Source: Cyanophora paradoxa CCMP329
Lineage: Eukaryota > Plantae > Glaucophyta
Direction of reading: 5' to 3'
DNA: 64,000 bases
Assembly: GCA_004431415.1 (NCBI GenBank)
Contig: QPMI01000603.1
Coordinates: 124,001 to 188,000 of the forward strand
Each line of letters opens with the position of its first letter. Within the stretch, counting starts at the first letter, position 1. The position numbers and the translations under genes are program-made. Shown one piece after another: positions 16,721 through 43,888 of the stretch. The notes under the pieces were generated by a model, which saw nothing but the letters and a program-made list of their open reading frames with translations, had not been told where the DNA came from and did not search any database.

Positions 16721-18139
16721 AACGAGGGGGCGGGGGCCCTCGCTCCAGGTGTCCATGACAACGGTGCCACGCGGCAAGCGAACGTGTGTCGGCTCATTCT
16801 GGGCGCCTTCACCTTCGTCCAGCGGGGCGATAGCGCTGCTAGAAGTGGGATCAGGTCGCGGACGACCGAGGTCACGTTCTTGCTGCAGGAAGTGCATGTA
16901 CTCTTCCTCGTCAGCAACGTCGAGATGCGACGGGGGCGCAATGGCATATCGAGACTGCCGTGAATTCTTGCCCTTGGGAGGCTTCACCCGCGGTACGGGG
17001 CATGCCTTGGCGTTCAGCGCCTTGCGGGATTGTCGCCGTCTGCGCCGCTCCTCCGGGGTTCGGTTCCGAACAGAGGGCAGGGGTACGAGCGCGTCGATCT
17101 CAGACGGGGTACGGCCCATCTCTGCCAGTTGGCGTCGCCGTTCGAGCGTCGTCGCCGTCCTTTCCCGCGAGGCTTCGTGCAGATCTCGGGCCGCACGCGA
17201 ACGTCTGTCGCGATCACTGGCGAGGCGGTCAGCGTAGTCCTTTTCAAGCCGTCGCTGGTATTGGCGCGGGACACTCCAAGCCGTGCTCCGTCTTGAGTTC
17301 GACGTTCCGTCGGACGCCGAGGACTGCGAAGATTGGCCGTCATCCGTGAGGGCCCGGCGTCGTGCCCGTTCCACAGAGTCGCGTAGCGTGCGGTCAGCTG
17401 CTTGACGATCGAAGCCTCGCAAAGATGGACGGGGTAGCGACGGCTCGCTCTCCTCGTCTGTACCCCCTCCCCCTCCTTTCGGTGACTGAGACCGAGGCCT
17501 CCGGGCCGAGCTCTCCCGTCCTCGAGCTTGAAGCCCGTCAGCGGAGCTCTCCTGTCCTCGAACTTGAAGTCGGCGGCGGCGACCCTCGGCCGGTAGCCAG
17601 GCCGCGCCGTCGAGTGTATGCTCGAGGTTCGTCACCCCGCGGCGTCGCCGTGCAGGAGGGGCCGTCGCGCCCGCCTCGTCTGCCGCTGCGGCCGGTGCAG
17701 GCGTGTCAACTTCCATGGGTACGACGTCGGGGGCAGAGAGGGCGCCGTTCTCGTGGAGCCGTTCCAGCGTGATCTGGGACTCCACGTCTTCCAGGCCGCC
17801 GTTCTCGACGATGTCACGCACTCGCTGAGTGTCGGGCGTCAACGACCTTGGACGTCGCCGTGAAGTCTGAGGGTCGTCGCGGTCTCGGCGCGGTGGCGCC
17901 GGGGCAAGGTGCTCGGGTCGCGTGGTGGCGCGGCGTCTATCCCCAGTAGGGATCCACGCCGGCCCGTCCAGAGTATGTTGCAGGGCCGAGGAGGTGCGGT
18001 GGATGGCGACGCGGTAGAGTTCGCGTGGATCGTCGTAGTCTCCCGCATCGGGCACACCGAACCCGTGAGCGCCGTCTGGTATCGAAGTCGTGATGTCAGT
18101 GCCGTCAGCGCCGCCAGGCTTGTACACTGCGTGCGTCTC

Positions 18140-19509: not shown

Positions 19510-20014
19510 TTTACGCCTCGCTTCATTCGGAATCAGAGAAGCCTAGCTAGCCTAACTTGCCTACGACTATTCTAAAGGGATGCACGGTATAGCGCATCGG
19601 GAGTGGCCCTGAAGGTACGGCAGCTGGATGCTGCTTTCCCGAGACCTAACGTGGGGATAACACGTCGGCGACCGACCAGGGCGGGTCGCCTTATGCTCTT
19701 TCGGCCGCTTCCTTCCGGAGGCGGGTGAAAGCTTACCCCTGCTCCGGACCGGAGCGGCGGTAAGGCTGAGTAATCCCGTACCCGTGCGGCGGGTACCGGA
19801 TTCTCGTGGCCGAGGCGGAGGTTTTGGCGTACCCCTGAGCAGGGTACGCGTTCAGCTCGAGCCACGCCTGACGGGGCCTGGCGGGGCGAATGCTGTACCC
19901 CGGCGCGGGGTACGCGATTCTACCCGGGCCGGTAAGCGGTCCCGGGTACCGCCGCCGAGGCGCGGGGTGGCGATTGTGCGTGAAAACATCGCACGAGTGC
20001 TGTACCCCTACCAA
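19510..20014 (-). repeat. Split direct repeat B2 (~505 bp)
   Basis: Near-identical to 20432-20935. Confidence 0.95.
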
Positions 20015-20116
20015 GATTGCCAGAGTATTCTACGGATACTCGTAGCGCGTTGGAAAAGGATAGAGCCGTCGCATCCACAAACAGCCGATTGTGAAAACGC
20101 GGGGAGGAGGGCGGGA

Positions 20117-20431
20117 GCGATTTCGCTTCGCCGCTGGGTGCCTGGTCAAGCTGGCAACCAAGGACGAAGTTATGCCGAAGGGCAGCCGAAGGAATGGCCG
20201 TACCCCGGCCTTCGTTCGCCTCAGGGCGCGACCGAATCAAATTCTGAGTTCTCCCCGGAGTCGGTGCAGAACTCGAATTCTGCTATACCGTGCTCGAGGC
20301 CCGGACCCGTCGCTTAGGCCGGTCCGGTCGCTCGGTCCTTCTAGCTAAGGTAGGCAGTTGGCGCTCTGGCTTCTCTTCTATTCATTCCGTCGGCGCAAAA
20401 CTCGGTTTACGCTTAATTGCGCAAACCCCGA
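20117..20431 (-). repeat. Split direct repeat A2 (315 bp)
   Basis: Near-identical to 29709-30023 and, inverted, to 35296-35610. Confidence 0.95.
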
Positions 20432-20935
20432 TTTACGCCTCGCTTCATTTGGAATCAGAGAAGCCTAGCTAGCCTAACTTGCCTACGACTATTCTAAAGG
20501 GATGCACGGTATAGCGCATCGGGAGTGGCCCTGAAGGTACGGCAGCTGGATGCTGCTTTCCCGAGACCTAACGTGGGGATAACACGTCGGCGACCGACCA
20601 GGGCGGGTCGCCTTATGCTCTTTCGGCCGCTTCCTTCCGGAGGCGGGTGAAAGCTTACCCCTGCTCCGGACCGGAGCGGCGGTAAGGCTGAGTAATCCCG
20701 TACCCGTGCGGCGGGTACCGGATTCTCGTGGCCGAGGCGGAGGTTTTGGCGTACCCCTGAGCAGGGTACGCGTTCAGCTCGAGCCACGCCTGACGGGGCC
20801 TGGCGGGGCGAATGCTGTACCCCGGCGCGGGGTACGCGATTCTACCCGGGCCGGTAAGCGGTCCCGGGTACCGCCGCCGAGGCGCGGGGTGGCGATTGTG
20901 CGTGAAAACATCGCACGAGTGCTGTACCCTACCAA
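20432..20935 (-). repeat. Split direct repeat B1 (~504 bp)
   Basis: Near-identical to 19510-20014. It abuts A2, recreating the joined element ends (+ strand ACCCCGA|TTTACG). Confidence 0.95.
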
Positions 20936-21118
20936 ACAAGAGTCAGGTCACAGCCAGTTGAAAGAGCGTCGGGAAGGTCTCTGAGGGTGCCGCGCAGACC
21001 AAGCGGGTTCGAAGAGACAAAATTGTATTATAAAGAGTCAGGGCTACAATGGTGTCACACTCCTAGTGAACATTATGTAGGGCCGGCCGCGGGTGAGAGA
21101 GGCGCCGGCGGCGCCGGC

Positions 21119-22087
21119 TCAAAAGCCGAGGTCGGCCAGGTCGGAGGACAGATGAAAGAGGTAGTCCTCAATATATCCTTGGGGCACGGAAGAGTACAGT
21201 GCCCAGCGGCCATGCCGTCGGATCCAAGTGGCCGGGAGGCCCCGGCGGGCCGCGGCCGTCGCGCCACCGCGGCGCAAGCTGTGGCCCGAGAAGTCGGTCG
21301 GGTCGTAGCCGATGGCCTCCGCGGCCTCTTTCACGAGGCGGCGGACGAAACCAACGGTGATGGCCGCGGCGGGATCGGAGAGGCGGGGGAAGAGGGGGGT
21401 CCCGGGCGCCGCCTGCACCGCCGTGCTCGCGACGTACGCGCACAGCAGGCGGACGGGGCACGAGGCGGGGCATTTGCCCGGGTGAGGTAAACCACCGCGC
21501 CGTGGGCGGTCCTGTCGGTTTTGGAGCGCCGGATGTGGAGGGCGATGCGGGGGAAGGGAGGAGTGAGAATTCGAGGTCGTCGACCCGCAGCGCCACCAGC
21601 TCCGCTCCCCGGAGGAAGCCCGCGATGCCGGTCGCGAGGACGGTGGCGTCGCGGAGGCGCCGGGGAGGGGCGCGTGACAGGAACGATGGGGTGGTCAACC
21701 ACGCGCGCAGGTCGCCGGGCAAGAAGGCGCGGCGTTGCGCTACGGGGCGGCCCAGGCGGGCCTGCATGCCTCTCCATGCGGTCGAGTACATGAACGAGCG
21801 GGGTCTGGTGGGGTCGACGAGGCCGCGAAGTTTGAGTTCGCGCCACACGTGGGCGGCGAGGCCTTTAACGGTGCTCGCCGCGAGGTCTTTTCCGGAATGG
21901 CGGCGTCGCTGGGTGGCCGCGTCGGCCAGGAAGAGGAGGATGGACCGTTCTGCGTCCGGCGCGAGGCCGTGGCACTCGACGAACTCGAAGTAGCGGCGGG
22001 CCGCCCGCCGTTGGCCCGCTGACGTGCCGGGGGCGAAGGCCGCCCCCTGCCAGGCCGCGAGCTCCGCCTCCGCGGGCGCCGGGGTTA
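21119..22087 (-). CDS. Tyrosine recombinase of the YR retrotransposon
   Basis: Catalytic set FLRGAEL (R), RRSKTDR (K), SGHSLRRGG (HxxR), HGRW and PQGYI (Y). Indel frameshifts near 21560 and 21420. No ATG ahead of the N-terminal domain. Confidence 0.9.
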
Positions 22088-25000
22088 CTGCCAGAAGGTC
22101 AGTTCCAGGGGCCAGCGGGAGGAGCCGAGGCCGATGCGCCCAGAGTAGAAGATGTGGGACGGGAGGCTAGAAAGCGGGAAAGAGGTGACGGCGGCGGGGC
22201 GGGGGGGGAGGCGAAGCTCCCCGAGGGCCACCGACCAGGTGGTGCTGGGCTGGGAGGGGAGCAGGAGGCCCAGAGGGCCGGACGCTGGGAAGCGTCGGAG
22301 GGAAGCGATCAGGGCCGCGCGCAGCCGGGAGTCGACCGTAAGGACGGTCGGGGCGCTCGCGCGGACGCTGCCAAGCCACGGATCGTCCTCGAAGGCGACG
22401 TGGTGGTGCTCGGCAAGCGGGGCGTCTAGGTGCGTGCGGCACCGCGAGAGGAGGGCCCGATGCAGCGACGGGGCGCGAGCGCCGTCGCGGGAACCGCGGT
22501 CGGCGAAGACGTTGGCCGCGCCGGGCAAATGGCGGGCGGAGATCGAGACGCCGAGAGCCGCGCAGCGGTGCCAGAGGCGAGCGCTCAGGTCAAAGAGGCG
22601 GGCCGAACCGCCGCCCCGAGCGACTGCCGCGACGGCGGAGCGGTTGTCGCAGCGGATGAGAACGTGCGCACCCACCGGAAGGGCGGGGAAGAGCTCGTCC
22701 GCGGCGGCCACGATCGCGCGAAGCTCGCGTTCGTTGCTGCTGGTCTCGCCGCGCCGCATGGGGCCCTCGCTCGCGCGGAGTTCGGGGGGGAAGGTGCCGA
22801 AGACGGACCACGCGGGGCGTTGGCGGACGGCCGTGGGTCGGCGGACTCGAGCTGATCGAGGAAGGCGGCGTAGCCGTAGCCGGAGGCGTCCGTGAACAGC
22901 CGGAAGAAGGTCCGAGGCGTCCAGATGGGGTGCGCCGGGCGCTCCGGGCGTTGGAGGGCCGCTTGGAGCCAGCGGAGGCAGTCGAGTGCTGGGCCTTCGA
23001 TGGTGACGGCCGACTGATTGAAGGGGTCGGCGAGGGCGTCCGAGGTCGACATGAGGCCGAAAAGTGGCCGAGTCATGAGACGAACGGCCGGGAACGCCAT
23101 GCGCAGCGCGATGAGTGAGCCCGCCAGCTTTTGCAGATCGCGAGCCGACGCCGTGAGGCCGCGGGGGCCGGGCGCCCGGTCGAGGACGCCGGCGAGGCGG
23201 GCGAGCGTTTTTGCGACCTTCTTCGGGGTCACCGCGAAAACGCCGCGGTCGGGACGGACGTCGATCTCGATGCCGAGGTACTCGGTGCACTGGGTCGGTG
23301 TGAAGTCGGACTTTTCCGAGAACGTAATGCCTAGCTCGGGCGCGCAAGCACGTAGGTGCTGGGAGACGAGCTCCGCGATTTCGCGCGACGGGCAGATGAA
23401 CAGGCCGTCGTCGATGTACGTGCAGAGCTTCACGCCAGCGCTGCCCAGTACTTGGCAAAGGCGCGCGTGACCTTCGTGAAGGCGAAGCAGGCGATGTTCA
23501 CGCCGAAGCAAAGGGCCTGGTAAATGTAGAGTTTGCCGCGCCAACGGAACGCCAGGAGGCGCTGGGTGTCCTTGTTCAGGGCGATGTGATAGTAGCCTTT
23601 TTTAAGGTCGAACTTCACGAGCCAGCAGCCGGGGGTGAGGTAGGACGCAACCTCGTCCAGTGTTTGGTACCGGAACGTCGGCAAGCGGATGAACGGGTTC
23701 ACGGGGGTGGCGTCGAGGCACAGGCGGAACTTGTCTGGGCCGGCCTTGTCGACCACCAAGAGCGAAGACTCGTTAACGACGAGCTGTTTGTCTTCCTCGG
23801 TGGCAAGGCGGGTGACGCCGAGGCGCAGCATCGCCGCGACCTCGCTGTCCACGAAGGCTTCGTGTTCTGGGGTCCGGTGGCACGAGGGGCGTGGGCCCTC
23901 GGCGCGCGTGCGGGGAATGTCTGCTAACGACGCTGCCGGCGTGCCGTCGGCGTGCTGGAGTGGGAGGCGCAAGCCTTTGCGCAGGATGAGGCCCACCCAC
24001 GAGGGGACCGTCGTGTCAGCCCGCCGGAAGTAAGCCCGCCAGGCATGCGCGTAATGCTGGAGTTGCCCCGCCCGAAACTTCTGTGCGGCCGCCGCGAAAT
24101 CGTACGGGCCGGGGTCCCCGTGTGCAGCTACGAGTGCTCGCAATTTTGCGAATGGGTCGCGCACAAAGACACGCGGTGTACTCGAGGGTACAGACAGCGG
24201 TACAGGCGGCGGACGCGACTGGTCACAGTCTACTGGAAGGGTCGTGGCGGGGGGAACGGCTGGCACGGGGGGCCCCTTGCGGTCGGCGGCAGCCGCCGGA
24301 GGGGGTGTCGCCGCAAACACCCGCGCCAGGAGTGGAAGCGGCTCAGCCGTCGGCCGGCGGCTGCGGCTTGCGCCGGGGGGGCCGCTGGACGGCGCCGCCG
24401 CGGCCTCCGCCCCGCTGACGGTGGTGGGGTTGGGGCTGGGCCGGCTGGGCAGTCCCGTACTGCCGCCGGGCCTGCTTCCAGGCGCGCCCGCGCTGCTGGC
24501 CGCGGTGGGTTGGCCCGCCGGAGCCGGGGTCCTCGACGTCACCGTCGTCGTCGTAGGAGAAGGTCGCGACGCCGCCGTAGGAGTGGGCTGACCGAGGGTC
24601 GGTCCGGGCGGAGGAGCAGGTGGGGCGGACGGACCGGCCTGCGAGGCCTGGGAGAAGAGCGCCGCATGGGAGAGTGTGGGGCGAGTGGGGGCCTTGTCCG
24701 GGCGGGGCTGCGGAAGCTCCGTGCGAGCGAGCGGTGGCATCATGAAGAAGGAGCTCCGCTTGCGGCTCGTCCGGCCGTAGGACGACAGTAGCTCCCGTGG
24801 CTCCGTCCACGCGCTCACGCTGTCTTGCAGCCGCTTGAGGAGACGCTTGAAGAGCGGGTCGTCCTCGAGGCAGGCCTGGAGCACCGCCGACGTCTGGGCG
24901 ATGTCCCGAAGCTTCTTGTAGACCGGGCGGGTGAGGGCGTTCCAGTCCGTCAGGAGTTGGCCGAGGGGCCGGTCGGGCCGCCGGGTAGGCGGTTGATGAC

Positions 25001-28000
25001 GTCGCCGACCTGGTCGAACGCCGCGATGGCCTGGCGGAGTTCCGAGTTGCCCATGTCGCGCAGCACCAGGCCGTGGGAGAAGCGCGCCAGATCGCGCATG
25101 CAGGCGATGCCGTACTTGGCAAGAGCCGTGGTGATGCGCTCGTCGGGGAAGGGTCGCTGCTGACTGTCGCCGGGGAAGACGGCGTTGTCGAAGCACGACT
25201 CGATTTCCTTGATACGGGCGGCCAAGTCCGGGACGCGGGCGGAGTTGTCGACCGCCGTGGAGGGAATGTTGAGCTTGGCGAAGGCCGTCTCGCGCAGCGT
25301 GAGCTCGGGGAGGCCCTCGTAGACGAGGGGGGGCTCGGCCGGTGGCGCGGCCTTCTCTGCCGCCGTCGCCTTGGCCTGGGCGGTGGCGCCCTTCGCCTTG
25401 TCGTCGCCGCGCGCCTTCTTGGGGGCCGGAGCCTCTGCAAAAAGGCATGTCGGCCGGGCTGTGGCCGACCGCGGAAAACAATCAGCGCGGACCGAGGGGA
25501 GCCTTCTCCTTGGCGTGGCCGCGCGTCGCCTTGCCGCTGTACACTGGGCAGCGGATTCTGCACGATCCCGGGTCAGTGTGACGGAGGGAGGGTTTGGGCT
25601 GCGGCGGCCACGAGTCCGTACCGGACTCGGAGGGAGCGTCGACGTGGGGACTGGCGTCCTGCGGCGTCGAGGTGTCGTCCGAGTCCCAGTCGCCGGCCCA
25701 GTCGTCCTCGCCGGCGGGTTCGTCGCCGGGGGCGTCGGATTCCGCCTCGTCCTCCATCTCTGCGTCGCTGGGGACGAACGGTCGGGCGCGGGTGGAGGAT
25801 GAGGTCGGGGCTGCTCTGTCGGCGCTGCGGCGGCGGGCGGGGCGAGCTTCTGCGCGGCCTGGGTGGCCCCGCGGCTGCCGGAGCGGGCGGCGGGGACCCC
25901 ACGGGGGCCGGCGGCGAGTGGCGCGGCGGTGTGGGGAGCGGCCTGCCGGGGCGGGAGCTGCGGGCCGGCGGGCGGCATCCGGAAGCCGGGGTCGGCGGGG
26001 CCGAACCAGTCGGTCTGCGGGCCCCCGAAGCCCGGGAACATGCCGGCGCCGTGGTTGGCGGTGCCGGAGGAGGGCCAGGGAGCCGCGAAATGCGGGGGCG
26101 CCTGGACGACCCAGCCCGCTGGCGTGACCGTGGAAGCGGCCGAGTAGCGGGGCTGCTGCTGGTGCTGCAGGAACGGGGACGGAACTCCCGCGGGCCAGAA
26201 CGGGGGAGGCGGGCCGCCGCCGGCCATGCTGGCGAGGCCGGCTTGCAGCATGGACGCCGCGAGCGCCTGCGGGTTGGCCGGCGGAACGGGCGGCAGGTCG
26301 GAGACCGCGGGGCCGGGTTCGGCGTGGGAAGGTCGCGGGTCTCGGCGAACTGCAGGGCCTTGTCGCGGTCGGCTGCGGTGAAGTGGGCCGGGTCAGAAAG
26401 TCGGGCCAGGCGAATCTCAAGGGGGTCGCCTAGGCGGGGGTGAGCCGCCGGGGAGGCCAGCGGGCGCGTGGACGGACCGGTCTTGGCCTTGCGGCTCTTG
26501 GCGGGTTTGGGTGGCGGGGCCTGTGCTTCCGCCTCCTCGGCGGGTGAAGGCGGGGCGTCTGACTCGCCGCCTTCGTCGGCTGAGTCTGCGGGCGCCGGGG
26601 GGGCCTTCGGGGCCGAGGCCGCGGTCGCCTTGGTCCGCTTAGGCGGGCGGGTCGACCGCGAGGCGCGCGGGCGGTCGACGTCGTCGTCCGCGTCCGCGTC
26701 GGCGGTGTCGGTGTTCCGGCCGCAGCCGCCGGCTTGGCAGGCGCGGGGCGGCGCGGAGGAGCGAGGCCGGTGGGCGGGGCTGCCCCTGCGCGGCGGGGTG
26801 GGCGGCGGTAGAAAATGAGCGGGGGTGGGTAGCGCACCGGCGCGCTTCTGGGCCGGAGGGGGTGCCGAGGGGGCCGCGGCCGCTCCATGTGCCACCTTCG
26901 GAGCCCGTGCTCGCTGCCCGCGAAAAAAGAAGCATCGGCAGCGAGCGTGGGCGAGGCGAGAGGGGGTAATGTGTGCGCGGACCGACTTGGGGTCCGCTGG
27001 GGGTGCGCTGGCGGTGGCGGCGGTGGCAGCGTCGGCGTCGCCCGAGGCCGCGGCGCCGCGGCGTTTTCGCGCGGCCTCCGCCGCCTTCAAGATGTGGGGG
27101 AAGTACAGGCTGACGGCCTTGTGGGCCGGCTGGTCCCAGTCGCGCAGCACCGCGGAGGCGTCCCAGTGGGCCGGGTGGAAGCCGCAAGCGCGAGAGAAGT
27201 CGGCGAACGAGAACTGCGAAGCGGGCGACCGCTGAGTGCGCTGGCGTGCAGCGAGCGCGCGGCGGGCGGACTTTTCCGAAGGGGACGGTGCCGACTGTCA
27301 GGCCGCCCGGAAGAGATGCCGGCCACTCGCGTTTTGGAGAGACGCGGGCCGGACCGGGGGCCAGGCCGAAGGCGGCGACGATGTCGTTGCGCAGGATCTT
27401 GCGGTGATCGCGGGAGAGCGCCTTGCTTTTCTCGATGAAGGTGACAAGCAAGGGCCGGAGCCAGCCGTGGGCGTCGGCTACCGCCGTCTTGGAGTACTTG
27501 GGGACTGACTCGGGGGACCAGGCGTAGAGCTGAGTGAGCGCACCGAGCGCCGTCACTTTTTCCCAGGGTTCGAGGGCCGCCCAGTCACTGTGGAGGGTGA
27601 GGGGCGCGGCACGGTGAGCGAGGAGTGGCGTACCGGCACGGAATGTCGTCGTAGTAAATCGGGAACCCTCGCGGGAGGCCGACAGGGATGGTGCCGTACT
27701 TGTAGCCGTAGAACTCCGTGACCTCGAGGCAGGTGGCGCCGAAGGTAGCCAGGAGTACGGCGGCCGACTCGCCGAAGCGGAGTACCGCCTCGTTGAACAG
27801 CTCCCGCGGAACCGAGTCGCGCACCTCCGAGTAGTCGCTGGCGATCGCGGTTAACGCGTGACGTCGAGAGGCGGGGCATGCGGACATGTAGCCAGGGCTG
27901 GTGGGGTCGGAAGAACACGGGGCGACGGCGTAGAAACTAGCCTCGTCGACCGCGAAAGCGATGATCGGGACGAGAGAAGTGACCAGCATGGTTGACGCGT

Positions 28001-28218
28001 CCGCCGGGCGAGACTGTCAGGCCGTCGGTTAATAAGCGAGCGGGGGGTCATGCAGGCGTGACGGGGGCGGCCCACCATGAGACCGCCGTCGAGCGTGCCG
28101 CTGGAGAGGAACGGGGGGAAGATCCCGCCGTCGTCGCGCAGTCGCCGCAGAAGAGGAGGCGATGCGGTTCGGGCGCGTGGCGCCAGTAGTCGATGATCAT
28201 GGAGGCGGACACGCTCAT
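22085..28218 (-). CDS. Spliced ORF1/gag-RT-RNaseH-(degenerate MTase) polyprotein, about 1,900 aa, 8 predicted exons
   Basis: RT motifs KFRLCLD, KFDLKKGYYHI, QALCFG, TYIDD and EYLG. RNaseH motifs LFTDASGYG, NERELRA, IRCDN and HLPGAANVFADRGSR. Upstream ORF fragments join through GT-AG introns (first 28075-28014, last 25492-25435). Several homopolymer indels. Confidence 0.8.
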
Positions 28219-28384
28219 CGCCTTGCTGCCGCTGCCGGCGTCCTTATCTGCGCGGGGCCGTGTCAGCCGGTGTGTTGCGGCTGCGGCGTGGCGGGGGAGG
28301 GGCGGGGAGGCTAGATAGAGGAGCGCGGTGCGGCGCGCGTCGACTCTCGCGGGGTCTGCCGTCGGAGCCGACGGGGAACGCCGC

Positions 28385-29030
28385 TGCCTCGCCGGTGCGC
28401 GCGCCGGGCTCCGCCGGGGCACCGCGCGGGAGAGGACGGAGCACGTAACTGTGACTCAACGTCCCGCGGGGCTCGCCGGCGTGCCGGGCGCGAGCTTCTC
28501 CGCCTTCTCGCCAGTGCGCGCGCCGGGCTCTGCCGGGGCACTGCGCGAGGTGGGACGGAGCACGCGGCCCGTGCATCTACGTCCCGCGGGGCCCGCCGGC
28601 GCGCCGGTGGGTCGCGCCGCCTTCCTGTCGATGTACGCGCCGGCTCCGCCGGGACATCACACAGGGAAAAAAGGAGGGGAGCGGAGCACGCGGGCGTGCC
28701 TGGACGCTCTGCGGGGTTCGCCGGCGCGCCGGCCGCGAGCCTCTCCGCCTTCTCGCCAGTGCACGCGCCGGTCTCCGCCGGGGCACTGCGCGAGGTGGGA
28801 CGGAGCACGCGACCCGTGCCTCGACGTCCCGCGGGAGACCCCGGCGCGCCGGTGGGTCTCGCCGCCTTCCTGTCGATGTACGCGCCGGGCTCCGCCGGGA
28901 CATCGCACAGGGGAAGAAAGCGGAGCACGCAGTCGTGCCTCGACGCTCTGCGGGGCTCGCCGGCGCGCCGGCCGCGAGCCGCTCCGCCTTCCTGCCGGTG
29001 TGCGCGCCGGGCTCTGCCGGGACACCGCGC
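28385..29030 (-). repeat. GC-rich tandem repeats in the leader of YR element copy 1
   Basis: About five to six related ~120-bp units, each with CGCGCCGGGCTCYGCCGGG and CGGAGCACG. Confidence 0.85.
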
Positions 29031-29708
29031 AAGGTATGATGATGGCGGCCGCCGAGGTCCTGGAGCGCCACCGTTTTTGGCTCTCTCGCTCGGTGGCCGC
29101 CGTCATCTGCGCCGCGCCGCCGGCATGTCAGGCAGGGCATGGCGGCGCGGGTGTGGTCGGGGCGGCTTCGAGGCGGAGTTCGTCGCGCCCGTCATCGCCG
29201 CGTCGACCCAGCCGTCGCGAGGCCATGCGCGAGATGCGTAAGTGTGCGTCGCGACGGAATCGAGAAGGGGAAAACAAAGAAAAGGAAGGGCTGTCGGGCT
29301 CAGACACTTAAACGAGCGAGACTCTTCTGAGATAGTGCTCGGGCTAGGGTTCTAAGTGCACGGCCGCGGTTGGCGGCACGGCCCCGAGATAGCCGGTCGA
29401 AGATCTTCTAACCGACGGGCGGCCGGGCCGAGAACGAGCGTACCGGGCTTTAGGAAGCCCCAGTTGTAAGAGTCCAAGAGCGACTGAGAGGATCCGTCGG
29501 ACTGCCAGGGCATCATCCAGGAAGACTGAACGCCGTCAGGCCACGGATCGAGCAAGGTTCGCTGGATCGCGCCCGCCGCAGGGGATTTGGAGAAGAAGCG
29601 CTGAGCTAGCTTGCTCCACTGCAGGCTGGCGTGGCCGGTCGGCGGAATCGCCGATTCGGGTGCGTTCGGCTGCGTCATGCTGAACGCAGGTGGTATGAAC
29701 TGGCTGTG

Positions 29709-30023
29709 GCGATTTCGCTTCGCCGCTGGGTGCCTGGTCAAGCTGGCAACCAAGGACGAAGTTATGCCGAAGGGCAGCCGAAGGAATGGCCGCACCCCGG
29801 CCTTCGTTCGCCTCAGGGCGCGACCGAATCAAATTCTGAGTTCTCCCCGGAGTCGGTGCAGAACTCGAATTCTGCTATACCGTGCTCGAGGCCCGGACCC
29901 GTCGCTTAGGCCGGTCCGGTCGCTCGGTCCTTCTAGCTAAGGTAGGCAGTTGGCGCTCTGGCTTCTCTTCTATTCATTCCGTCGGCGCAAAACTCGGTTT
30001 ACGCTTAATTGCGCAAACCCCGA
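29709..30023 (-). repeat. Split direct repeat A1 (5' end of copy 1)
   Basis: Matches A2; I noticed one substitution (CGCACC vs CGTACC). Confidence 0.95.
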
Positions 30024-33000
30024 GTGCTGGCGTTGCGTGAGAAGGTTCTGGAGTTGAGTGCGATCCTCGGGAAGGGCGTCGGGGTTCGACTCCGATGGTT
30101 TCAACAGGGCGTCCACCATCGCCTTGATGGTCTCGGGCGATGGCTTTGTAGGAGGCGCAGTGTCACTCGACGGGGGCTCCATTCGAGCGTCGGCATTGAC
30201 GGACGCGATGGGCACCGTGGGGCCGACTGCGGGGCCAACCAGCATCGGCTCGGAGTCGAAGCGGGCGAAGTGAGGCTCGAAGAAGCTGGCCAGCTCCATG
30301 AGCTCCTTGTCGTTGAAGTGATCGCCGGTTCGAGCAGTGTAAGGGGTGACGACACGTGCGACGTACGACATGAGACGCTCGCTGGCCTCGTGGGATAGCG
30401 GGATGTCGGCAGCAGCATCGACGGAGCCAACATGCGCCGCCTCGCCCTCCTTGCAGTTGGGTTCGGGCGGTCGTCGGTGGTAGACCTCCGGGTAGAGGCG
30501 TCGGGCTCGGGAGATGTAGCGCCGTGGTTGCGAGCGTCGGGGTACGACAACAGGCTTGAAGTTCTCATAGATTTGCGCGGCTACGGAAGAGATCGGGAAT
30601 GTCAGTTGTTGTTGAGGTGTCCAGGAGCTGTAACACCCCTTGGGGTAGGTCTCGACATTCTCGTGTGGACGGAATTCGGACTCCGGCCAAGTCCCGAATT
30701 CAGTCTCCGCAATCACAGTTCCGGCTCGCAGGCGGACAGGCCGCCTGTGAGGGTTGCAGATCTGCACGAAAAACGTGCCGTGTGCTGGGTTGCGGTGAAT
30801 TTGGTATGGCACCAAGAATTCGACTTCGTCGGCTCCGTCGAAGCCGTCGTCGTCGAGGAGGAGTGGTGGCGGAGTGAGGAGGACTTCCGGTGCGCCGAGA
30901 GTCGTGTTCGAAGTCGTTTGTGGCATGTAACATCGAACGAGCGATTCACCCGGCCGTACAGTGATGTCCTTCGCCAATCGGACCAGAACGCCGCCGTCGT
31001 GCTGGCCCGCAGCCGAAAAGGGACGTGGAATCGTTCGCCATCCGAGGAGTCAGGCGACGTGATCGTCATTCCCCAATTTGCTGGGTCGAGCACGATGTGA
31101 GCGTTGAGCGCCACCAGCGTTGTGAGGCCGAGTAGCATTGGAGTGTTGCCCATGAGACCAGGCGCGACGACGAGGACCTTCCGCGGAATTGTGACCGGAC
31201 CAACCTTAATTGCAATGAATGCGATGCGCGCATAGGCAGTCATGTCCGTTCCAAAGCCGGTGAGGTGCACGCGCGGAGCGTTGCTGTAGCGAAGGCCTGG
31301 CAGTTTGTCGGCGATACTGCCGTCGAGTACGTCCGCAGCGGCTCCTGTATCCACCAATGCCTTGGTGAGGAGGTATTGAAGGACTTGTCGTCGGTGATCG
31401 ATAGCGGCGATGTGCAAGTTGACGCAGATTCGGCCGTCGTTGATGCGCTCTCTGAGCGTGCGGTTCGTGTCCGTCATTCGCGCAATGGGGTGTGGTACTG
31501 ACGGGCCGCCGTCGCCGAAGAGGGGAACGTCAAGGGGGTCCTCGACGTCGTCAAATCCCAACATGCGTGCCGCGCAGACGCGAAGCGAGGCGAGGTAGCT
31601 CTGCTCATACGGTGTGCACGGTGTCGAACCGGAGATGACGCTGGCTGGCGGGAGCGGTGCCGTCCGCTTGAGGCGAGGTCGCTTCCGCGTGGTTGTCCGC
31701 CTGTGCACGTTCATGAGGACGTCCGTCGCGGCGAATGGGCGTGCCCTGCAGGGAGCTGCCGACAGACGCAGCGGGGGCCGGTGATTGCGCATTGTGGCTG
31801 AAAAGTATCCGACGCCAAGGATGGGCTTGCAGTCGGCGTTTGCGAGCTTGATGAGGTGGCGGTTGCTGGGCCAGCCATAGTGAATCTCGTTGATCGCGTC
31901 AACTTCGGTCCCCGCTGCGCCATCCCGTCGTTCAGCCGGCCGGTAGCCAGGCTCTCCGGGGGATCGGAACGGGATGGCTTCGCGGTGGCGCGAGAGAGAC
32001 GCCCGGAGATATTTGACGAGTTGGGGCCAAGCGTGGCGGAGGCGCGTGTCGCGTTGGAGTACGTGCCGCTCGTAGAAACGTGTCCGTTGAGCGTCATGAC
32101 TACGGAAGTCATTGTGGAGGACCACGTCCCACGCCGCGAGGCCGATTGAATTGAGGATGAAGGCCGCCCGAGTGAACAAGGCGCGAGTGAAAGCGAGGTC
32201 GGCTGACAGGCCCTGAGAGGTTGTGAAATCCCACCGAAAGTTCTCGATCTCGTGGAGCGTCTCCAGGATTGCGTGGGCGTTGAGTTGGTGAGACCGCTGA
32301 AGCGGCGACCAGTCGTACAAGTGATAACTGGCAGCGAATTCAGGGTCCTCGAAGGCACGGTGTCGCGCGGACGTGATCCGCTCGTAGTCCGGTCCCCGTC
32401 CAGAGTAGAGGAGCCAGCAGCCCATCGTGAGATCCGTCGACGTCCTGGGATTAGTGAGGTCGTTGTATGCGATCGTGTACGTGTGCTGCCGTGTGAGCGG
32501 TCCAAGGAGGCCGTGGGGGGCGAACGCGGACGACTGCACGCGCGAGGCTAGGCTCGGCGTCCCGGCCGACGGGGTCTCCGATGGAGCTACGGACTCGGCG
32601 GTGGAGCCACCACTGTCCGAGCTGGAGTCGTCGCCGTCAGAGGTTCCCGTCGTCTCGGTCCCCGTAGGACTACGACGCGGAGGCCTGTTACTGCCAGATG
32701 GCTTGAAGACAACACCCTGGATGTGACCGAAGCGTGCCAGTCCCGTCGGCTCGTTGGTGCGCAGATCCTTGAAGTCGGTCGACCAGACGACGAAGGGTCG
32801 GACAAAGGGCTTGCGCGCAATCCCAGGGTTCCGACGAATGTACTCGTCCGTGCCCACGAGCTTGATCTTGCCGTCGAGGCGCGGGTCCAAATGTACGCGC
32901 GCGACTCCTCTGCCTTCGTCGTAGTGATGTAGTTCATGATGTTAGTGAAGCGCGTGCGGCCTTCGTACGGGTCGACAGGCGCGCCGTGGGGGCCGTGACC

Positions 33001-35295
33001 AATGTAAATGTGGGGGATCTGACGAAGGAGGCTGTCGTTGTCCGGATCGCCCAGGGAGTGACGCAGGGGGAGGACGTCGACGATCTGTACCGCCCGGTAG
33101 GCTTCGCGGCTAGTGAACGTGATGGGCCGCCTCGTCGCCGCGTCGACGGTGGCGTGATTGTAAACGAATTGTTCCAACCAACCGTGGAGTAGCGCCCGCG
33201 CCTGCGGTTCGCGACTGAAGATGGCGGCGCCGAATTCATTGTAGAATGGATCGAATGTGAAGTTGCCATATTCGGCGTGACGGAATTGCTCGTGTATGTC
33301 GGCGTATCGCTGTTCGAAATCCATAATAGCGTTGCGCACTGCGCTCGCGTTGACGTCATAGACACTGGGACGATGCGGGTGTGACGGATCGTTCGTGGGA
33401 TCGAAGTCAGCGCCCCGGACTTGGGCGTTGAGTGCGTTGATGACTCCATCCGGGAGTCGGAATGCTACGGGCCAGCAGTGGTTTCGATCCATGTCGACAT
33501 CTTCGCGAGCCGCCGGGGGTGTCTCGTGCTTGATCTGGACCGCCAACCAGTCGTTGGTTGCCTTGTGCAGTAGGGATTCGAAGGCTGTGATTAAATGTGC
33601 CGGGTCGACGCGTTCGCAGTCAGGGTACTCGACCTCGTACCATTTGTCGAGTTTGGCACTGCGCGCCACTTCGCCTGAAGCCGTGAAGCGGAAGTGCAGC
33701 TCATCCTCGTGGCTACGAACGTAGTCGATGATGATGTTCCCGAGTTCCCCCGGTAGGGCTCGAGGAAGAACGACAAGGCACCGTGCAGCTTGACTGCCGC
33801 CGCCAGGTACGCTGCGATTCCGTACACCCAAGTGTGTACCGAAAGCGGGAACCCAGGACCTGGTGGACGACGGGGGGCGTTGCAGGCGCGGTGCCCGTGG
33901 GCCCGCGACGACGCAGAGACACGACGACGCCCCCAGGGCCAGTGTAGTCATTGACGGACACCGGGAAGTACTTGGGTCGGGGCCGCACGGGTGCGGCCCC
34001 GCCGCCTCGTTTGGGGGTTTCCTCGTGCCCGCGATGATCTGCTGCCAGGTGTTCCGGTTGTTCGCGTCGAAGATAGTGATGTGCGAGCGGTTCTGGATCG
34101 CGTTGGGGCACCGCGGCTGGGTCCGGCCGGTGCAACGTGCGTGAATCGGACGATTCGAGGGCCGCACAGGTCAGCATTGGCCGGCGTAAGAGTCATGGGC
34201 GGCGCGTTGAGGTCGTCGGGCATGGCAATCTCGTAGAAGCATCGTTCGACATCTTGACGTGAAGCGGAGTCACGGAGGTGCGCGTGGTTGTCCTCGTCGT
34301 AGATGCAGTCGAAGTAGTCGGCATACTTGTTGGCCGGGTGGAACTCGTCGGCGGCCGTGATCAGGAACGATCGGAAGGGCAGGCCCGCGCGGTTGTGCTG
34401 GCTGAGTTCGCCATGGCCGGGAGCACCGGCGCGGTACGGGTAGGTGCCGGGGCCGACGCCGTAGCGTAGGACACGACTGAGTGCTCGCGAGAAGTTCGAC
34501 CAGCGTACGTGCATCTTCATGAGGAATGGGCGCATGTACGGGACGCGCCGGAGAAATGCCTCGAGACCAGAGTCGCCGAGTAGCACGTATGGCATGTGGA
34601 CCTCACCTAGGACGTGCATGTACTTCTTTGTCGTGGTGGCGGGATGAACTGGGGGTGGGTCCCGAGTCGGGATTCCCTCCAGCTCTTCGACCGGCGGCGG
34701 CTCCGGGAGCTCCTCCGGTCTGTGCCCGTCCTCCACAGTGAGCTCCTCGGTCAGATCAGCCGTCTGTCCGAACGGGGCGGGGCCTCCGAGGATGTGAGCC
34801 GCGACGGCGAAGATGTGGGGCGCGTGTCGCCCATGTTCCTGGATCGTTTTGCAGTACGCTGTGGCCAGGAAATCCGTGTTCGTGAAGAGAAGCGGTGTCA
34901 TGAAGATGTGATAGGAGGTATCCCGTCCCGGATCAGTATCCAGAGGTAGGAAGTCACCTCCAGCTCGCGTCTCCTCGGGGCTGTATGTGCGCATGCCGTA
35001 CGGGAGTGGGGGGCGAGGATTGTGGAGACGGATTGGGTACCAATCGTTGATCGTTTGGGCGAATAATTCCCCGTTGATGTGATTTTTGCGCCGTCCAAAA
35101 CCCGCGTAGAACGTGTCGCGCTCGTTCTCCGTCGAATCAGGTCGCGGTTCCCGTCGGACCATCACGCCGCTCAGATCCGGCCACACTCCGTGCTGGTAGC
35201 CAGCGCCGTCGACGACCGTGAAGCCCTTCGCCCATTCCTCGTTGAGGAAGGCCCAGAAATAGACGTCAGGAATGTCAGCGTTCTCCGAGAGTAGC
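30024..35295 (-). CDS. Upstream part of the gypsy polyprotein: long unassigned region, aspartic protease, post-protease linker
   Basis: Overlapping minus-strand ORFs 33948-35369, 32587-34167, 30713-32890 and 29970-30977 are linked by frameshifts. Protease motifs ALVDTGAAADVL and MLLGL. Confidence 0.75.
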
Positions 35296-36289
35296 TCGGG
35301 GTTTGCGCAATTAAGCGTAAACCGAGTTTTGCGCCGACGGAATGAATAGAAGAGAAGCCAGAGCGCCAACTGCCTACCTTAGCTAGAAGGACCGAGCGAC
35401 CGGACCGGCCTAAGCGACGGGTCCGGGCCTCGAGCACGGTATAGCAGAATTCGAGTTCTGCACCGACTCCGGGGAGAACTCAGAATTTGATTCGGTCGCG
35501 CCCTGAGGCGAACGAAGGCCGGGGTACGGCCATTCCTTCGGCTGCCCTTCGGCATAACTTCGTCCTTGGTTGCCAGCTTGACCAGGCACCCAGCGGCGAA
35601 GCGAAATCGCCACAGCCAGTTCATACCACCTGCGTTCAGCATGACGCAGCCGAACGCACCCGAATCGGCGATTCCGCCGACCGGCCACGCCAGCCTGCAG
35701 TGGAGCAAGCTAGCTCAGCGCTTCTTCTCCAAATCCCCTGCGGCGGGCGCGATCCAGCGAACCTTGCTCGATCCGTGGCCTGACGGCGTTCAGTCTTCCT
35801 GGATGATGCCCTGGCAGTCCGACGGATCCTCTCAGTCGCTCTTGGACTCTTACAACTGGGGCTTCCTAAAGCCCGGTACGCTCGTTCTCGGCCCGGCCGC
35901 CCGTCGGTTAGAAGATCTTCGACCGGCTATCTCGGGCCGTGCCGCCAACCGCGGCCGTGCACTTAGAACCCTAGCCCGAGCACTATCTCAGAAGAGTCTC
36001 GCTCGTTTAAGTGTCTGAGCCCGACAGCCCTTCCTTTTCTTTGTTTTCCCCTTCTCGATTCCGTCGCGACGCACACTTACGCATCTCGCGCATGGCCTCG
36101 CGACGGCTGGGTCGACGCGGCGATGACGGGCGCGACGAACTCCGCCTCGAAGCCGCCCCGACCACACCCGCGCCGCCATGCCCTGCCTGACATGCCGGCG
36201 GCGCGGCGCAGATGACGGCGGCCACCGAGCGAGAGAGCCAAAAACGGTGGCGCTCCAGGACCTCGGCGGCCGCCATCATCATACCTTGC

Positions 36290-36935
36290 GCGGTGTCCCG
36301 GCAGAGCCCGGCGCGCACACCGGCAGGAAGGCGGAGCGGCTCGCGGCCGGCGCGCCGGCGAGCCCCGCAGAGCGTCGAGGCACGACTGCGTGCTCCGCTT
36401 TCTTCCCCTGTGCGATGTCCCGGCGGAGCCCGGCGCGTACATCGACAGGAAGGCGGCGAGACCCACCGGCGCGCCGGGGTCTCCCGCGGGACGTCGAGGC
36501 ACGGGTCGCGTGCTCCGTCCCACCTCGCGCAGTGCCCCGGCGGAGACCGGCGCGTGCACTGGCGAGAAGGCGGAGAGGCTCGCGGCCGGCGCGCCGGCGA
36601 ACCCCGCAGAGCGTCCAGGCACGCCCACGTGCTCCGCTCCCCTCCTTTTTTCCCTGTGTGATGTCCCGGCGGAGCCCGGCGCGTACATCGACAGGAAGGC
36701 GGCGCGACCCACCGGCGCGCCGGCGGGCCCCGCGGGACGTAGATGCACGGGCCGCGTGCTCCGTCCCACCTCGCGCAGTGCCCCGGCAGAGCCCGGCGCG
36801 CGCACTGGCGAGAAGGCGGAGAAGCTCGCGCCCGGCACGCCGGCGAGCCCCGCGGGACGTTGAGTCACAGTTACGTGCTCCGTCCTCTCCCGCGCGGTGC
36901 CCCGGCGGAGCCCGGCGCGCGCACCGGCGAGGCAG
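36290..36935 (+). repeat. Leader tandem repeats of YR element copy 2
   Basis: Reverse complement of 28385-29030. Confidence 0.85.
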
Positions 36936-37100
36936 CGGCGTTCCCCGTCGGCTCCGACGGCAGACCCCGCGAGAGTCGACGCGCGCCGCACCGCGCTCCT
37001 CTATCTAGCCTCCCCGCCCCTCCCCCGCCACGCCGCAGCCGCAACACACCGGCTGACACGGCCCCGCGCAGATAAGGACGCCGGCAGCGGCAGCAAGGCG

Positions 37101-40100
37101 ATGAGCGTGTCCGCCTCCATGATCATCGACTACTGGCGCCACGCGCCCGAACCGCATCGCCTCCTCTTCTGCGGCGACTGCGCGACGACGGCGGGGATCT
37201 TCCCCCCGTTCCTCTCCAGCGGCACGCTCGACGGCGGTCTCATGGTGGGCCGCCCCCGTCACGCCTGCATGACCCCCCGCTCGCTTATTAACCGACGGCC
37301 TGACAGTCTCGCCCGGCGGACGCGTCAACCATGCTGGTCACTTCTCTCGTCCCGATCATCGCTTTCGCGGTCGACGAGGCTAGTTTCTACGCCGTCGCCC
37401 CGTGTTCTTCCGACCCCACCAGCCCTGGCTACATGTCCGCATGCCCCGCCTCTCGACGTCACGCGTTAACCGCGATCGCCAGCGACTACTCGGAGGTGCG
37501 CGACTCGGTTCCGCGGGAGCTGTTCAACGAGGCGGTACTCCGCTTCGGCGAGTCGGCCGCCGTACTCCTGGCTACCTTCGGCGCCACCTGCCTCGAGGTC
37601 ACGGAGTTCTACGGCTACAAGTACGGCACCATCCCTGTCGGCCTCCCGCGAGGGTTCCCGATTTACTACGACGACATTCCGTGCCGGTACGCCACTCCTC
37701 GCTCACCGTGCCGCGCCCCTCACCCTCCACAGTGACTGGGCGGCCCTCGAACCCTGGGAAAAAGTGACGGCGCTCGGTGCGCTCACTCAGCTCTACGCCT
37801 GGTCCCCGAGTCAGTCCCCAAGTACTCCAAGACGGCGGTAGCCGACGCCCACGGCTGGCTCCGGCCCTTGCTTGTCACCTTCATCGAGAAAAGCAAGGCG
37901 CTCTCCCGCGATCACCGCAAGATCCTGCGCAACGACATCGTCGCCGCCTTCGGCCTGGCCCCCGGTCCGGCCCGCGTCTCTCCAAAACGCGAGTGGCCGG
38001 CATCTCTTCCGGGCGGCCTGACAGTCGGCACCGTCCCCTTCGGAAAAGTCCGCCCGCCGCGCGCTCGCTGCACGCCAGCGCACTCAGCGGTCGCCCGCTT
38101 CGCAGTTCTCGTTCGCCGACTTCTCTCGCGCTTGCGGCTTCCACCCGGCCCACTGGGACGCCTCCGCGGTGCTGCGCGACTGGACCAGCCGGCCCACAAG
38201 GCCGTCAGCCTGTACTTCCCCACATCTTGAAGGCGGCGGAGGCCGCGCGAAAACGCCGCGGCGCCGCGGCCTCGGGCGACGCCGACGCTGCCACCGCCGC
38301 CACCGCCAGCGCACCCCAGCGGACCCCAAGTCGGTCCGCGCACACATTACCCCCTCTCGCCTCGCCCACGCTCGCTGCCGATGCTTCTTTTTTCGCGGGC
38401 AGCGAGCACGGGCTCCGAAGGTGGCACATGGAGCGGCCGCGGCCCCTCGGCACCCCCTCCGGCCCAGAAGCGCGCCGGTGCGCTACCCACCCCCGCTCAT
38501 TTTTTACCGCCGCCCACCCCGCCGCGCAGGGGCAGCCCCGCCCACCGGCCTCGCTCCTCCGCGCCGCCCCGCGCCTGCCAAGCCGGCGGCTGCGGCCGGG
38601 AACACCGACACCGCCGACGCGGACGCGGACGACGACGTCGACCGCCCGCGCGCCTCGCGGTCGACCCGCCCGCCTAAGCGGACCAAGGCGACCGAGGCCT
38701 CGGCCCCGAAGGCCCCCCCGGCGCCCGCAGACTCAGCCGACGAAGGCGGCGAGTCAGACGCCCCGCCTTCACCCGCCGAGGAGGCGGAAGCACAGGCCCC
38801 GCCACCCAAACCCGCCAAGAGCCGCAAGGCCAAGACCGGTCCGTCCACGCGCCCGCTGGCCTCCCCGGCGGCTCACCCCCGCCTAGGCGACCCCCTTGAG
38901 ATTCGCCTGGCCCGACTTTCTGACCCGGCCCACTTCACCGCAGCCGACCGCGACAAGGCCCTGCAGTTCGCCGAGACCCGCGACCTTCCCACGCCGAACC
39001 CGGCCCCCGCGGTCTCCGACCTGCCGCCCGTTCCGCCGGCCAACCCGCAGGCGCTCGCGGCGTCCATGCTGCAAGCCGGCCTCGCCAGCATGGCCGGCGG
39101 CGGCCCGCCTCCCCCGTTCTGGCCCGCGGGAGTTCCGTCCCCGTTCCTGCAGCACCAGCAGCAGCCCCGCTACTCGGCCGCTTCCACGGTCACGCCAGCG
39201 GGCTGGGTCGTCCAGGCGCCCCCGCATTTCGCGGCTCCCTGGCCCTCCTCCGGCACCGCCAACCACGGCGCCGGCATGTTCCCGGGCTTCGGGGCCCGCA
39301 GACCGACTGGTTCGGCCCCGCCGACCCCGGCTTCCGGATGCCGCCCGCCGGCCCGCAGCTCCCGCCCCGGCAGGCCGCTCCCCACACCGCCGCGCCACTC
39401 GCCGCCGGCCCCCGTGGGGTCCCCGCCGCCCGCTTCGGCAGCCGCGGGCCACCCAGGCCGCGCAGAAGCTCGCCCCGCCCGCCGCCGCAGCGCCGACAGA
39501 GCAGCCCCCGACCTCATCCTCCACCCGCGCCCGACCGTTCGTCCCCAGCGACGCGGAGATGGAGGACGAGGCGGAATCCGACGCCCCCGGCGACGAACCC
39601 GCCGGCGAGGACGACTGGGCCGGCGACTGGGACTCGGACGACACCTCGACGCCGCAGGACGCCAGTCCCCACGTCGACGCTCCCTCCGAGTCCGGTACGG
39701 ACTCGTGGCCGCCGCAGCCCAAACCCTCCCTCCGTCACACTGACCCGGGATCGTGCAGAATCCGCTGCCCCAGTGTACAGCGGCAAGGCGACGCGCGGCC
39801 ACGCCAAGGAGAAGGCTCCCCTCGGTCCGCGCTGATTGTTTTCCGCGGTCGGCCACAGCCCGGCCGACATGCCTTTTTGCAGAGGCTCCGGCCCCCAAGA
39901 AGGCGCGCGGCGACGACAAGGCGAAGGGCGCCACCGCCCAGGCCAAGGCGACGGCGGCAGAGAAGGCCGCGCCACCGGCCGAGCCCCCCCTCGTCTACGA
40001 GGGCCTCCCCGAGCTCACGCTGCGCGAGACGGCCTTCGCCAAGCTCAACATTCCCTCCACGGCGGTCGACAACTCCGCCCGCGTCACGGACTTGGCCGCC

Positions 40101-41448
40101 CGTATCAAGGAAATCGAGTCGTGCTTCGACAACGCCGTCTTCCCCGGCGACAGTCAGCAGCGACCCTTCCCCGACGAGCGCATCACCACGGCTCTTGCCA
40201 AGTACGGCATCGCCTGCATGCGCGATCTGGCGCGCTTCTCCCACGGCCTGGTGCTGCGCGACATGGGCAACTCGGAACTCCGCCAGGCCATCGCGGCGTT
40301 CGACCAGGTCGGCGACGTCATCAACCGCCTACCCGGCGGCCCGACCGGCCCCCTCGGCCAACTCCTGACGGACTGGAACGCCCTCACCCGCCCGGTCTAC
40401 AAGAAGCTTCGGGACATCGCCCAGACGTCGGCGGTGCTCCAGGCCTGCCTCGAGGACGACCCGCTCTTCAAGCGTCTCCTCAAGCGGCTGCAAGACAGCG
40501 TGAGCGCGTGGACGGAGCCACGGGAGCTACTGTCGTCCTACGGCCGGACGAGCCGCAAGCGGAGCTCCTTCTTCATGATGCCACCGCTCGCTCGCACGGA
40601 GCTTCCGCAGCCCCGCCCGGACAAGGCCCCCACTCGCCCCACACTCTCCCATGCGGCGCTCTTCTCCCAGGCCTCGCAGGCCGGTCCGTCCGCCCCACCT
40701 GCTCCTCCGCCCGGACCGACCCTCGGTCAGCCCACTCCTACGGCGGCGTCGCGACCTTCTCCTACGACGACGACGGTGACGTCGAGGACCCCGGCTCCGG
40801 CGGGCCAACCCACCGCGGCCAGCAGCGCGGGCGCGCCTGGAAGCAGGCCCGGCGGCAGTACGGGACTGCCCAGCCGGCCCAGCCCCAACCCCACCACCGT
40901 CAGCGGGGCGGAGGCCGCGGCGGCGCCGTCCAGCGGCCCCCCCGGCGCAAGCCGCAGCCGCCGGCCGACGGCTGAGCCGCTTCCACTCCTGGCGCGGGTG
41001 TTTGCGGCGACACCCCCTCCGGCGGCTGCCGCCGACCGCAAGGGGCCCCCCGTGCCAGCCGTTCCCCCGCCACGACCCTTCCAGTAGACTGTGACCAGTC
41101 GCGTCCGCCGCCTGTACCGCTGTCTGTACCCTCGAGTACACCGCGTGTCTTTGTGCGCGACCCATTCGCAAAATTGCGAGCACTCGTAGCTGCACACGGG
41201 GACCCCGGCCCGTACGATTTCGCGGCGGCCGCACAGAAGTTTCGGGCGGGGCAACTCCAGCATTACGCGCATGCCTGGCGGGCTTACTTCCGGCGGGCTG
41301 ACACGACGGTCCCCTCGTGGGTGGGCCTCATCCTGCGCAAAGGCTTGCGCCTCCCACTCCAGCACGCCGACGGCACGCCGGCAGCGTCGTTAGCAGACAT
41401 TCCCCGCACGCGCGCCGAGGGCCCACGCCCCTCGTGCCACCGGACCCC
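37101..41448 (+). pseudogene. Spliced ORF1/gag of copy 2, cut before the RT core
   Basis: ATG 37101. Predicted introns 37245-37306, 37687-37732, 38048-38105, 38334-38402, 38478-38529, 39695-39758 and 39825-39882. Confidence 0.75.
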
Positions 41449-43871: not shown

Positions 43872-43888
43872 ATGACTTTGCTGGAACT

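Follow-up and report, generated by a model that had tools for sequence, protein, structure and literature searches.

The window analysed here, a GC-rich stretch of 64,000 nucleotides from the Cyanophora paradoxa CCMP329 contig QPMI01000603.1 (positions 124,001 to 188,000, forward strand), carries one full-length copy and one 5' portion of a 10.5-kb element. This element is a tyrosine-recombinase (DIRS-order) retrotransposon with split direct repeats, and its first open reading frame (ORF1), in the position of gag, is interrupted by ten spliceosomal introns (Table 1; positions are those of the window). In copy 1, the split direct repeats follow the order A1 ... B1-A2-B2 that is expected for the PAT-like and Ngaro groups. 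The termini of the element are direct repeats, and not the inverted terminal repeats of DIRS1-like elements. Pfam scans gave no GIY-YIG match that would point to a Penelope-like element, a recombinase being present instead, and detected neither a DDE integrase nor a protease inside the element.

Copy 2 is inverted relative to copy 1, and self-BLAST and alignment showed that the inverted arms (23869-30024 and 35295-41448) are 99.6% identical over 6163 columns, with 7 mismatches and 16 one-base gaps. Copy 1 interrupts a Gypsy-like pol, whose protease half ends with '...LQNLLTQRQ' at 30027 and whose reverse transcriptase (RT) half resumes with 'FTQNINPRELL...' at 19506 on the same strand, so that the two halves read on across the copy to within 1 nt. 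Because this ORF is cleanly split, copy 1 represents a clean transposition insertion of the whole 10.5 kb. Copy 2, which lies 5.3 kb away and points the other way, begins within 1 nt of the nucleotide that terminates copy 1; since both arms stop at the element's own terminus, no arbitrary duplication border is involved. We conclude that copies 1 and 2 are separate insertions, as proposed by the first-pass annotation, a reading of the same DNA from its letters and open reading frames. The element is young and probably active.

To define the structure of ORF1, contigs from the RNA-type runs X1, X6 and X7, which belong to three studies, and from the DNA-type run X12 were aligned to 6000 bases of copy 1, and the joints were transferred to copy 2 by copy-copy alignment. 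The RNA-type contigs displayed ten joints, at which the removed segments read CT..AC on the forward strand of copy 1, corresponding to GT..AG on the coding strand. No joints were present in the DNA-type run, which was contiguous through all ten introns, two long contigs crossing nine of them without a branch. Exact removal from RNA at GT..AG boundaries and presence in DNA are thus both observed. Runs X1, X6 and X7 are taken as transcripts because the introns are missing from them, because their contigs share a common stop at 24172-24186 and because they leave 22581-23980 uncovered, while the DNA-type run is even throughout. These data demonstrate that the ten introns are genuine, spliced from an abundant mRNA and kept in every DNA copy seen.

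The first-pass annotation had proposed that about seven introns, mirrored in copy 1, break up the ORFs upstream of the RT in a multiply spliced mRNA. All seven segments were skipped at their exact coordinates, including intron 5, its weakest call (a multiple of three in length and free of stops), which is spliced like the others, and the contigs of the three RNA-type runs lack every intron, the same ten joints being found on copy 1. The number fell short by three: introns 2 and 7 have lengths divisible by three and no in-frame stop, and intron 10 lies downstream, beyond the range considered. Likewise, the fragmented ORFs do join into a single gene of 1090 amino acids, provided that ten introns are removed, with the 3' end of its mRNA lying just before pol. 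Neither of the two contrary outcomes that the annotation had named, transcripts unspliced at these sites and a continuous ORF broken by indels, was borne out; splicing occurred at every site. Intron lengths range from 46 to 105 nt, and 7 of the 10 are not multiples of three. The splice sites have a uniform donor (GTCCGC or GTCCGT in 6 of 10) and a CAG acceptor in 10 of 10. Host genes contain 9.2 introns on average, with a mean intron length of 86 bp (PMC6704402), so that the ORF1 gene looks host-like. An unspliced RNA would reach an in-frame stop after approximately 122 codons.

Table 1 Features of the DIRS-order element and of the interrupted Gypsy-like pol in the window.
Feature	Position (strand)	Counterpart in copy 1 (-)	Basis
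Copy 1, full-length (~10.5 kb): A1 ... ORF1 ... pol ... tyrosine recombinase ... B1-A2-B2	19509..30024 (-)		Self-BLAST
Copy 2, 5' 6.15 kb of the element; similarity stops at 41448	35295..41448 (+)	30024-23869	Alignment
A repeat, 315 nt, 99.7% identity	A1 29709-30023, A2 20117-20431 (-)		Self-BLAST
B repeat, 506 nt, 99.6% identity, on either side of A2	B1 20431-20935, B2 19509-20014 (-)		Self-BLAST
Tandem repeats 246/119 nt, between A1 and ORF1 start	36283..36931	28391-29035	Tandem Repeats Finder
ORF1 ('gag'-position) gene, 11 exons, 1090 codons	37101..40975 (+)		Piecewise frame count, GC3, gene-model match
ORF1 gene in copy 1	24343..28218 (-)		RNA-type joints
Intron 1, 62 nt	37245..37306 (+)	28014-28075	RNA-type joints
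Intron 2, 48 nt	37435..37482 (+)	27838-27885	RNA-type joints; missed by first-pass annotation
Intron 3, 46 nt	37687..37732 (+)	27588-27633	RNA-type joints
Intron 4, 58 nt	38048..38105 (+)	27214-27271	RNA-type joints
Intron 5, 69 nt	38334..38402 (+)	26914-26982	RNA-type joints
Intron 6, 52 nt	38478..38529 (+)	26785-26836	RNA-type joints; cut ambiguous by 1 nt, GT..AG fits
Intron 7, 105 nt	38839..38943 (+)	26373-26477	RNA-type joints; missed by first-pass annotation
Intron 8, 64 nt	39695..39758 (+)	25558-25621	RNA-type joints
Intron 9, 58 nt	39825..39882 (+)	25435-25492	RNA-type joints
Intron 10, 47 nt	40684..40730 (+)	24588-24634	RNA-type joints; missed by first-pass annotation
ORF1 mRNA 3' ends, probable poly(A) site	41131..41145 (+)	24172-24186	Contigs of all three RNA-type runs stop
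pol: conserved N-terminal region, RT, downstream region	22088..24176 (-)		RVT_1, sister-family alignment, translation
Tyrosine recombinase gene	21122..22166 (-)		Phage_integrase E=0.002 (below cut-off); GHSLRRGG and C-terminal Tyr readable
Gypsy-like pol, upstream half (aspartic protease), cut by copy 1	30027..32890 (-)		ORFs/domains
Gypsy-like pol, downstream half (RT, RNase H)	16211..19506 (-)		ORFs/domains

At intron 8, 10 letters were reported between the two sides of the joint; the next exon begins with these 10 nt, the aligner having broken at an assembly indel. A further apparent joint, from 24415 to 26708 (skipping 2292), was discarded: its ends are non-canonical, only 21 nt align on one side, and it was taken to stem from an unrelated contig sharing a short GC-rich word. 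At positions 24460 and 28127 of copy 1, all three RNA-type runs have a base found neither in copy 1 or copy 2 nor in the DNA-type contig, so that transcription may come from one or more copies elsewhere, or the strains may differ.

With the introns removed and the missing bases counted, the ORF1 coding sequence runs from the ATG at 37101 to the stop at 40973-40975, comprising 3273 nt (1090 codons plus stop) without an internal stop. The frame was checked piece by piece, each exon in its own frame; exons were searched singly, and public gene models were used where a continuous protein was needed. The periodicity of G+C at third codon positions (GC3) shifts from one frame to another where the introns lie. 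In this element, single-base homopolymer deletions occur in the PacBio assembly about once per 400-800 bases; at least 8 of them in each copy were checked against short-read contigs. A base is missing from copy 2 after 37803, 38181, 38217, 38313, 38442, 39290, 39445 and 41063, and from copy 1 at six further places. Since the short-read contigs agree each time with the copy that contains the base, all 16 one-base gaps between the copies represent homopolymer deletions made in the assembly; the few homopolymer indels that the first-pass annotation had allowed for are therefore assembly errors. These deletions break ORFs and have distorted the public gene models, introducing false introns into P0006, P0008 and P0012.

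The protein encoded by ORF1 aligns as a conserved N-terminal region, a Pro/Ala-rich middle, a C-terminal domain predicted, at low confidence, to be helical, and a basic Arg/Gly/Lys-rich tail. The C-terminal domain and the tail would suit a Gag-like nucleic-acid binder, a role suggested by these sequence features. Pfam searches with ten exon pieces of ORF1 returned nothing meaningful and no Gag domain, and a sequence search of the PDB with the N- and C-terminal domains gave no match. An ESM Atlas feature search yielded scores of at most 0.82, which is the range of chance, the capsid-protein rows being leads only. The AlphaFold model of the C-terminal domain, built from a 5-row alignment, is all-helical with a confidence (pLDDT) of 43, too poor for a fold search.

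Relatives of ORF1 were found only in Cyanophora. An exhaustive HMMER search with exon 10 against 1.84 billion cluster representatives retrieved three meaningful relatives, all EukProt Cyanophora paradoxa models, and a second search brought the ORF1 family to seven models in all (two of the three HMMER relatives included), on four contigs; when exon 10 alone was submitted to a word-index homology search, no match in its length range came up. In an exon-by-exon comparison with EukProt EP00741, model P0008 (tig00021326_g20294) proved to be copy 1 and model P0006 (g20296) copy 2, which places the window in the 2019 PacBio assembly. The exon order and junctions of ORF1 match those of the Cyanophora models P0006, P0007 and P0008. 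The public gene models thus already splice both loci, unnamed and not recognised as parts of a transposon. The pol model adjoining copy 1 is g20293, and near-identical ORF1 models, where their neighbours are known, adjoin pol models of the same family (g20294/g20293 and g23392/g23391). P0003, a relative on tig00021366 with 30% identity, has both the N-terminal region and the C-terminal domain. The public gene models also extend ORF1 by 181 residues into the 246/119-nt tandem repeats, probably wrongly.

Directly after the end of the ORF1 mRNA, at approximately 41141-41171, begins the pol region that is conserved among sister families. Its RT domain matches the RVT_1 profile in two pieces, with E 3e-5 for profile positions 58-139 and 1e-3 for 149-205; both fall short of the Pfam cut-off because an assembly indel at 23434 splits the domain. 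Indeed, the DNA contigs add a C after 23434 and a G after 22834 in the pol of copy 1, and near-identical and related pol gene models carry PF00078. With assembly errors allowed for, the pol frame is unbroken, and it is conserved across several Cyanophora families at 41-99% identity; those at 41-77% lie on tig00021133, tig00020553, tig00021687 and tig00000057. Between 22088 and 22834, where an RNase H and the methyltransferase-like domain that DIRS1/PAT-like elements have between RT and recombinase were sought, Pfam gave no match at E<0.1; this region is conserved among the Cyanophora relatives. The frame breaks in the recombinase gene look like further homopolymer errors, and its relatives P0018 and P0020 carry PF00589.

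The three RNA-type runs gave no contig over 22581-23980, within pol. A low-depth RNA contig at 22381-22580 was rejected as a transcript of this element, as it runs into sequence absent from the window and belongs to another element. No ATG precedes the RT domain in the pol frame, and approximately 115 conserved residues lie upstream of its first Met (24176-23433 in copy 1, reverse strand; 41141-41448 in copy 2). In two sister families, pol begins with a Met exactly at the conserved start. Retention of intron 10 would leave the exon-10 frame open without a stop into the RT; alone, this opening is not significant, 19% of shuffles being equally stop-free, and no GC3 coding signal is present between the ORF1 stop and approximately 24180. 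A further 65-nt GT..AG intron at 22167-22231 (reverse strand), with a pyrimidine-rich acceptor, is predicted from the exon boundaries of gene model P0011, in a region covered by no RNA contig; its removal would place the recombinase frame, which lacks an ATG, in continuity with that of pol. Outside the EukProt Cyanophora models, a single pol relative has DNA on record: L001, a 3790-nt Logan contig of ERR10034898 with 41-48% identity. Its pol ORF of 978 aa is unbroken and has a start of its own, and a second ORF comes after it.

We favour, with a probability of roughly 0.72, an interpretation in which ORF1 is built like a host gene, with ten short introns and a putative poly(A) site of its own upstream of pol, and in which the intron-bearing copies arise from a rare unspliced read-through transcript. 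Full splicing together with use of the internal poly(A) site would produce the mRNA for the 1090-aa protein. A rare full-length transcript would read through this site, escape splicing at all ten introns and serve as the template for new copies. As the first-pass annotation reasoned, such a template would call for selective handling of the unspliced RNA. The spliced mRNA, polyadenylated internally, contains neither pol nor the 3' repeats from which the DIRS model rebuilds an element, and so cannot yield a complete one; being a dead end for copying, it accounts for part of the intron retention. Several points weigh against this interpretation. The dead-end mRNA gives no reason why the read-through RNA should escape co-transcriptional splicing, and no unspliced, full-length or read-through transcript was seen among the RNA-type contigs, in which rare forms are dropped. 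Partly spliced templates should give viable copies lacking some introns, and that none was seen is unexplained, as is the expression of pol, which has no in-frame ATG before the RT. In addition, the RNA-type label of the runs is the tool's guess, yet the coverage pattern fits only RNA. Finally, the presence of the introns is shown directly for two copies and the DNA contigs, and the proteins of public gene models cannot reveal introns at other loci.

A more elaborate scheme, which we regard as possible and rather doubtful, makes splicing the element's expression switch, with a dedicated route that would protect the genome RNA. Removal of all introns and internal polyadenylation would yield Gag; retention of the last intron (47 nt) with read-through would yield Gag-Pol, the exon-10 frame being shifted into the ATG-less pol frame; and the completely unspliced read-through RNA would be the template. 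The Gag-Pol fusion via retained intron 10 is hypothetical. It is improbable that the element spreads at the DNA level, its tyrosine recombinase excising or copying a DNA circle that reintegrates in a Crypton-like manner, such that the introns would never be exposed to loss and the RT would be dispensable or unused. Such a route would fit a recombinase gene with readable catalytic motifs, a pol without RNA contigs and the lack of an evident pol start codon. However, the pol frame, once assembly errors are set aside, is intact and conserved at 41-99% identity across Cyanophora families, the split direct repeats, a requirement of the RNA-based DIRS model, have retained 99.6-99.7% identity, and many near-identical copies are not expected from cut-and-paste alone.

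Still less credit is due to the idea that ORF1 is a recently captured host gene whose introns are too young to have been lost. Its host-like architecture, with ten short introns and a putative poly(A) site, would be accounted for, as would the absence of a Gag or any other Pfam domain from every exon; however, its only homologues among the 1.84 billion cluster representatives are Cyanophora models, the near-identical ones adjoining a pol of the same family where neighbours are known, the 30%-identical P0003 reveals an old protein family, and the existence of at least six near-identical models at other loci implies that the gene was carried along through repeated rounds of copying. Slimmer again is the chance that the template is beyond the reach of the spliceosome for a trivial reason, being a full-length antisense RNA or residing in a splicing-free compartment or state, possibly throughout Cyanophora. 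On the antisense strand the introns would read CT..AC and would not be recognisable; yet no antisense transcript was seen, in contigs that carry no strand information, and the accepted DIRS model uses a sense transcript (PMC7192593). As for the view that there are no introns, the frame changes being indel errors in one continuous ORF, the many one-base homopolymer deletions of the assembly would have lent it support, but RNA-type contigs of three studies that lack exactly the ten segments, and DNA-type contigs that contain them, refute it and leave it practically no probability.

Among known elements, PAT-like, Ngaro and kangaroo elements share with the Cyanophora element the combination of RT and tyrosine recombinase, the lack of a detected DDE integrase or protease, the A1 ... 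B1-A2-B2 repeats and a first ORF in the gag position. By contrast, the first gene of the Cyanophora element has ten spliceosomal introns and its own mRNA 3' end. Copying through RNA is classically recognised by the loss of introns, on which the standard retrotransposition assay, used on DIRS-1 too, is based. In Dictyostelium, DIRS-1 loses an engineered sense intron when it retrotransposes (PMC7192593), which makes the retention of ten introns remarkable. Intron retention in an element copied through RNA is very unusual: Penelope-like elements, which keep introns after retrotransposition, are described as 'highly unusual among retroelements' in this respect (PMC8557442). These elements possess a telomerase-like RT, with or without a GIY-YIG nuclease, and usually one intron, often in the 5' untranslated region, whereas the Cyanophora element is of the recombinase type, with ten introns in its coding region. 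In retroviruses and some long terminal repeat (LTR) retrotransposons, the unspliced RNA is the genome and spliced RNA is the mRNA for some products, as for env mRNAs, the gag mRNA of Drosophila copia and Ogre. Retroviruses and LTR elements have one or few introns and read gag from the unspliced RNA, whereas the gag-position protein of the Cyanophora element is obtained only after ten splices. Our literature searches found no published report of intron-rich DIRS-order elements or of intron-bearing Cyanophora transposons, and the words intron and splicing are absent from three DIRS/Ngaro papers.

The conservation of ten coding introns by a recently active retrotransposon thus implies either a very effective separation of mRNA and template or an unrecognised way of copying. 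It offers a concrete system for asking how an RNA can stay unspliced in the presence of a spliceosome that efficiently processes the same sequence, and raises the question of why transposons in an intron-rich genome might need introns for their expression. For annotation, it matters that such loci pass for ordinary genes with several exons in the public Cyanophora set; finding them needs intron-aware transposon detection.

The 246/119-nt tandem repeats that precede ORF1 in both copies could be promoter or enhancer repeats. The interrupted Gypsy-like LTR element (gag, aspartic protease, RT and RNase H) occupies 16211-19506 and 30027-35290 on the reverse strand, on either side of copy 1; its 5' side abuts copy 2, and therefore one older element took two insertions of the same family. 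Copy 2 ends at 41448 beside a short palindrome, TGTTACCCCGGGGTAACA, and the remainder of this copy lies outside the window. Beyond this end (41449-43900 and 61100-63420), 1.5-kb direct repeats (42086-43622 and 61882-63417) and inverted repeats surround satellite arrays, and the sequence after 41448 may be another large element inserted into copy 2. A 490-bp satellite occupies 43880-45450, 56127-61107 and 63558-63984, in arrays of at most 10 units with 97-98% identity and a GC content below that of the surroundings. The interval 45445-56133 contains large inverted repeats (47009-47750 and 52968-53709, among others) together with GC-rich minisatellites of 40-41 nt.

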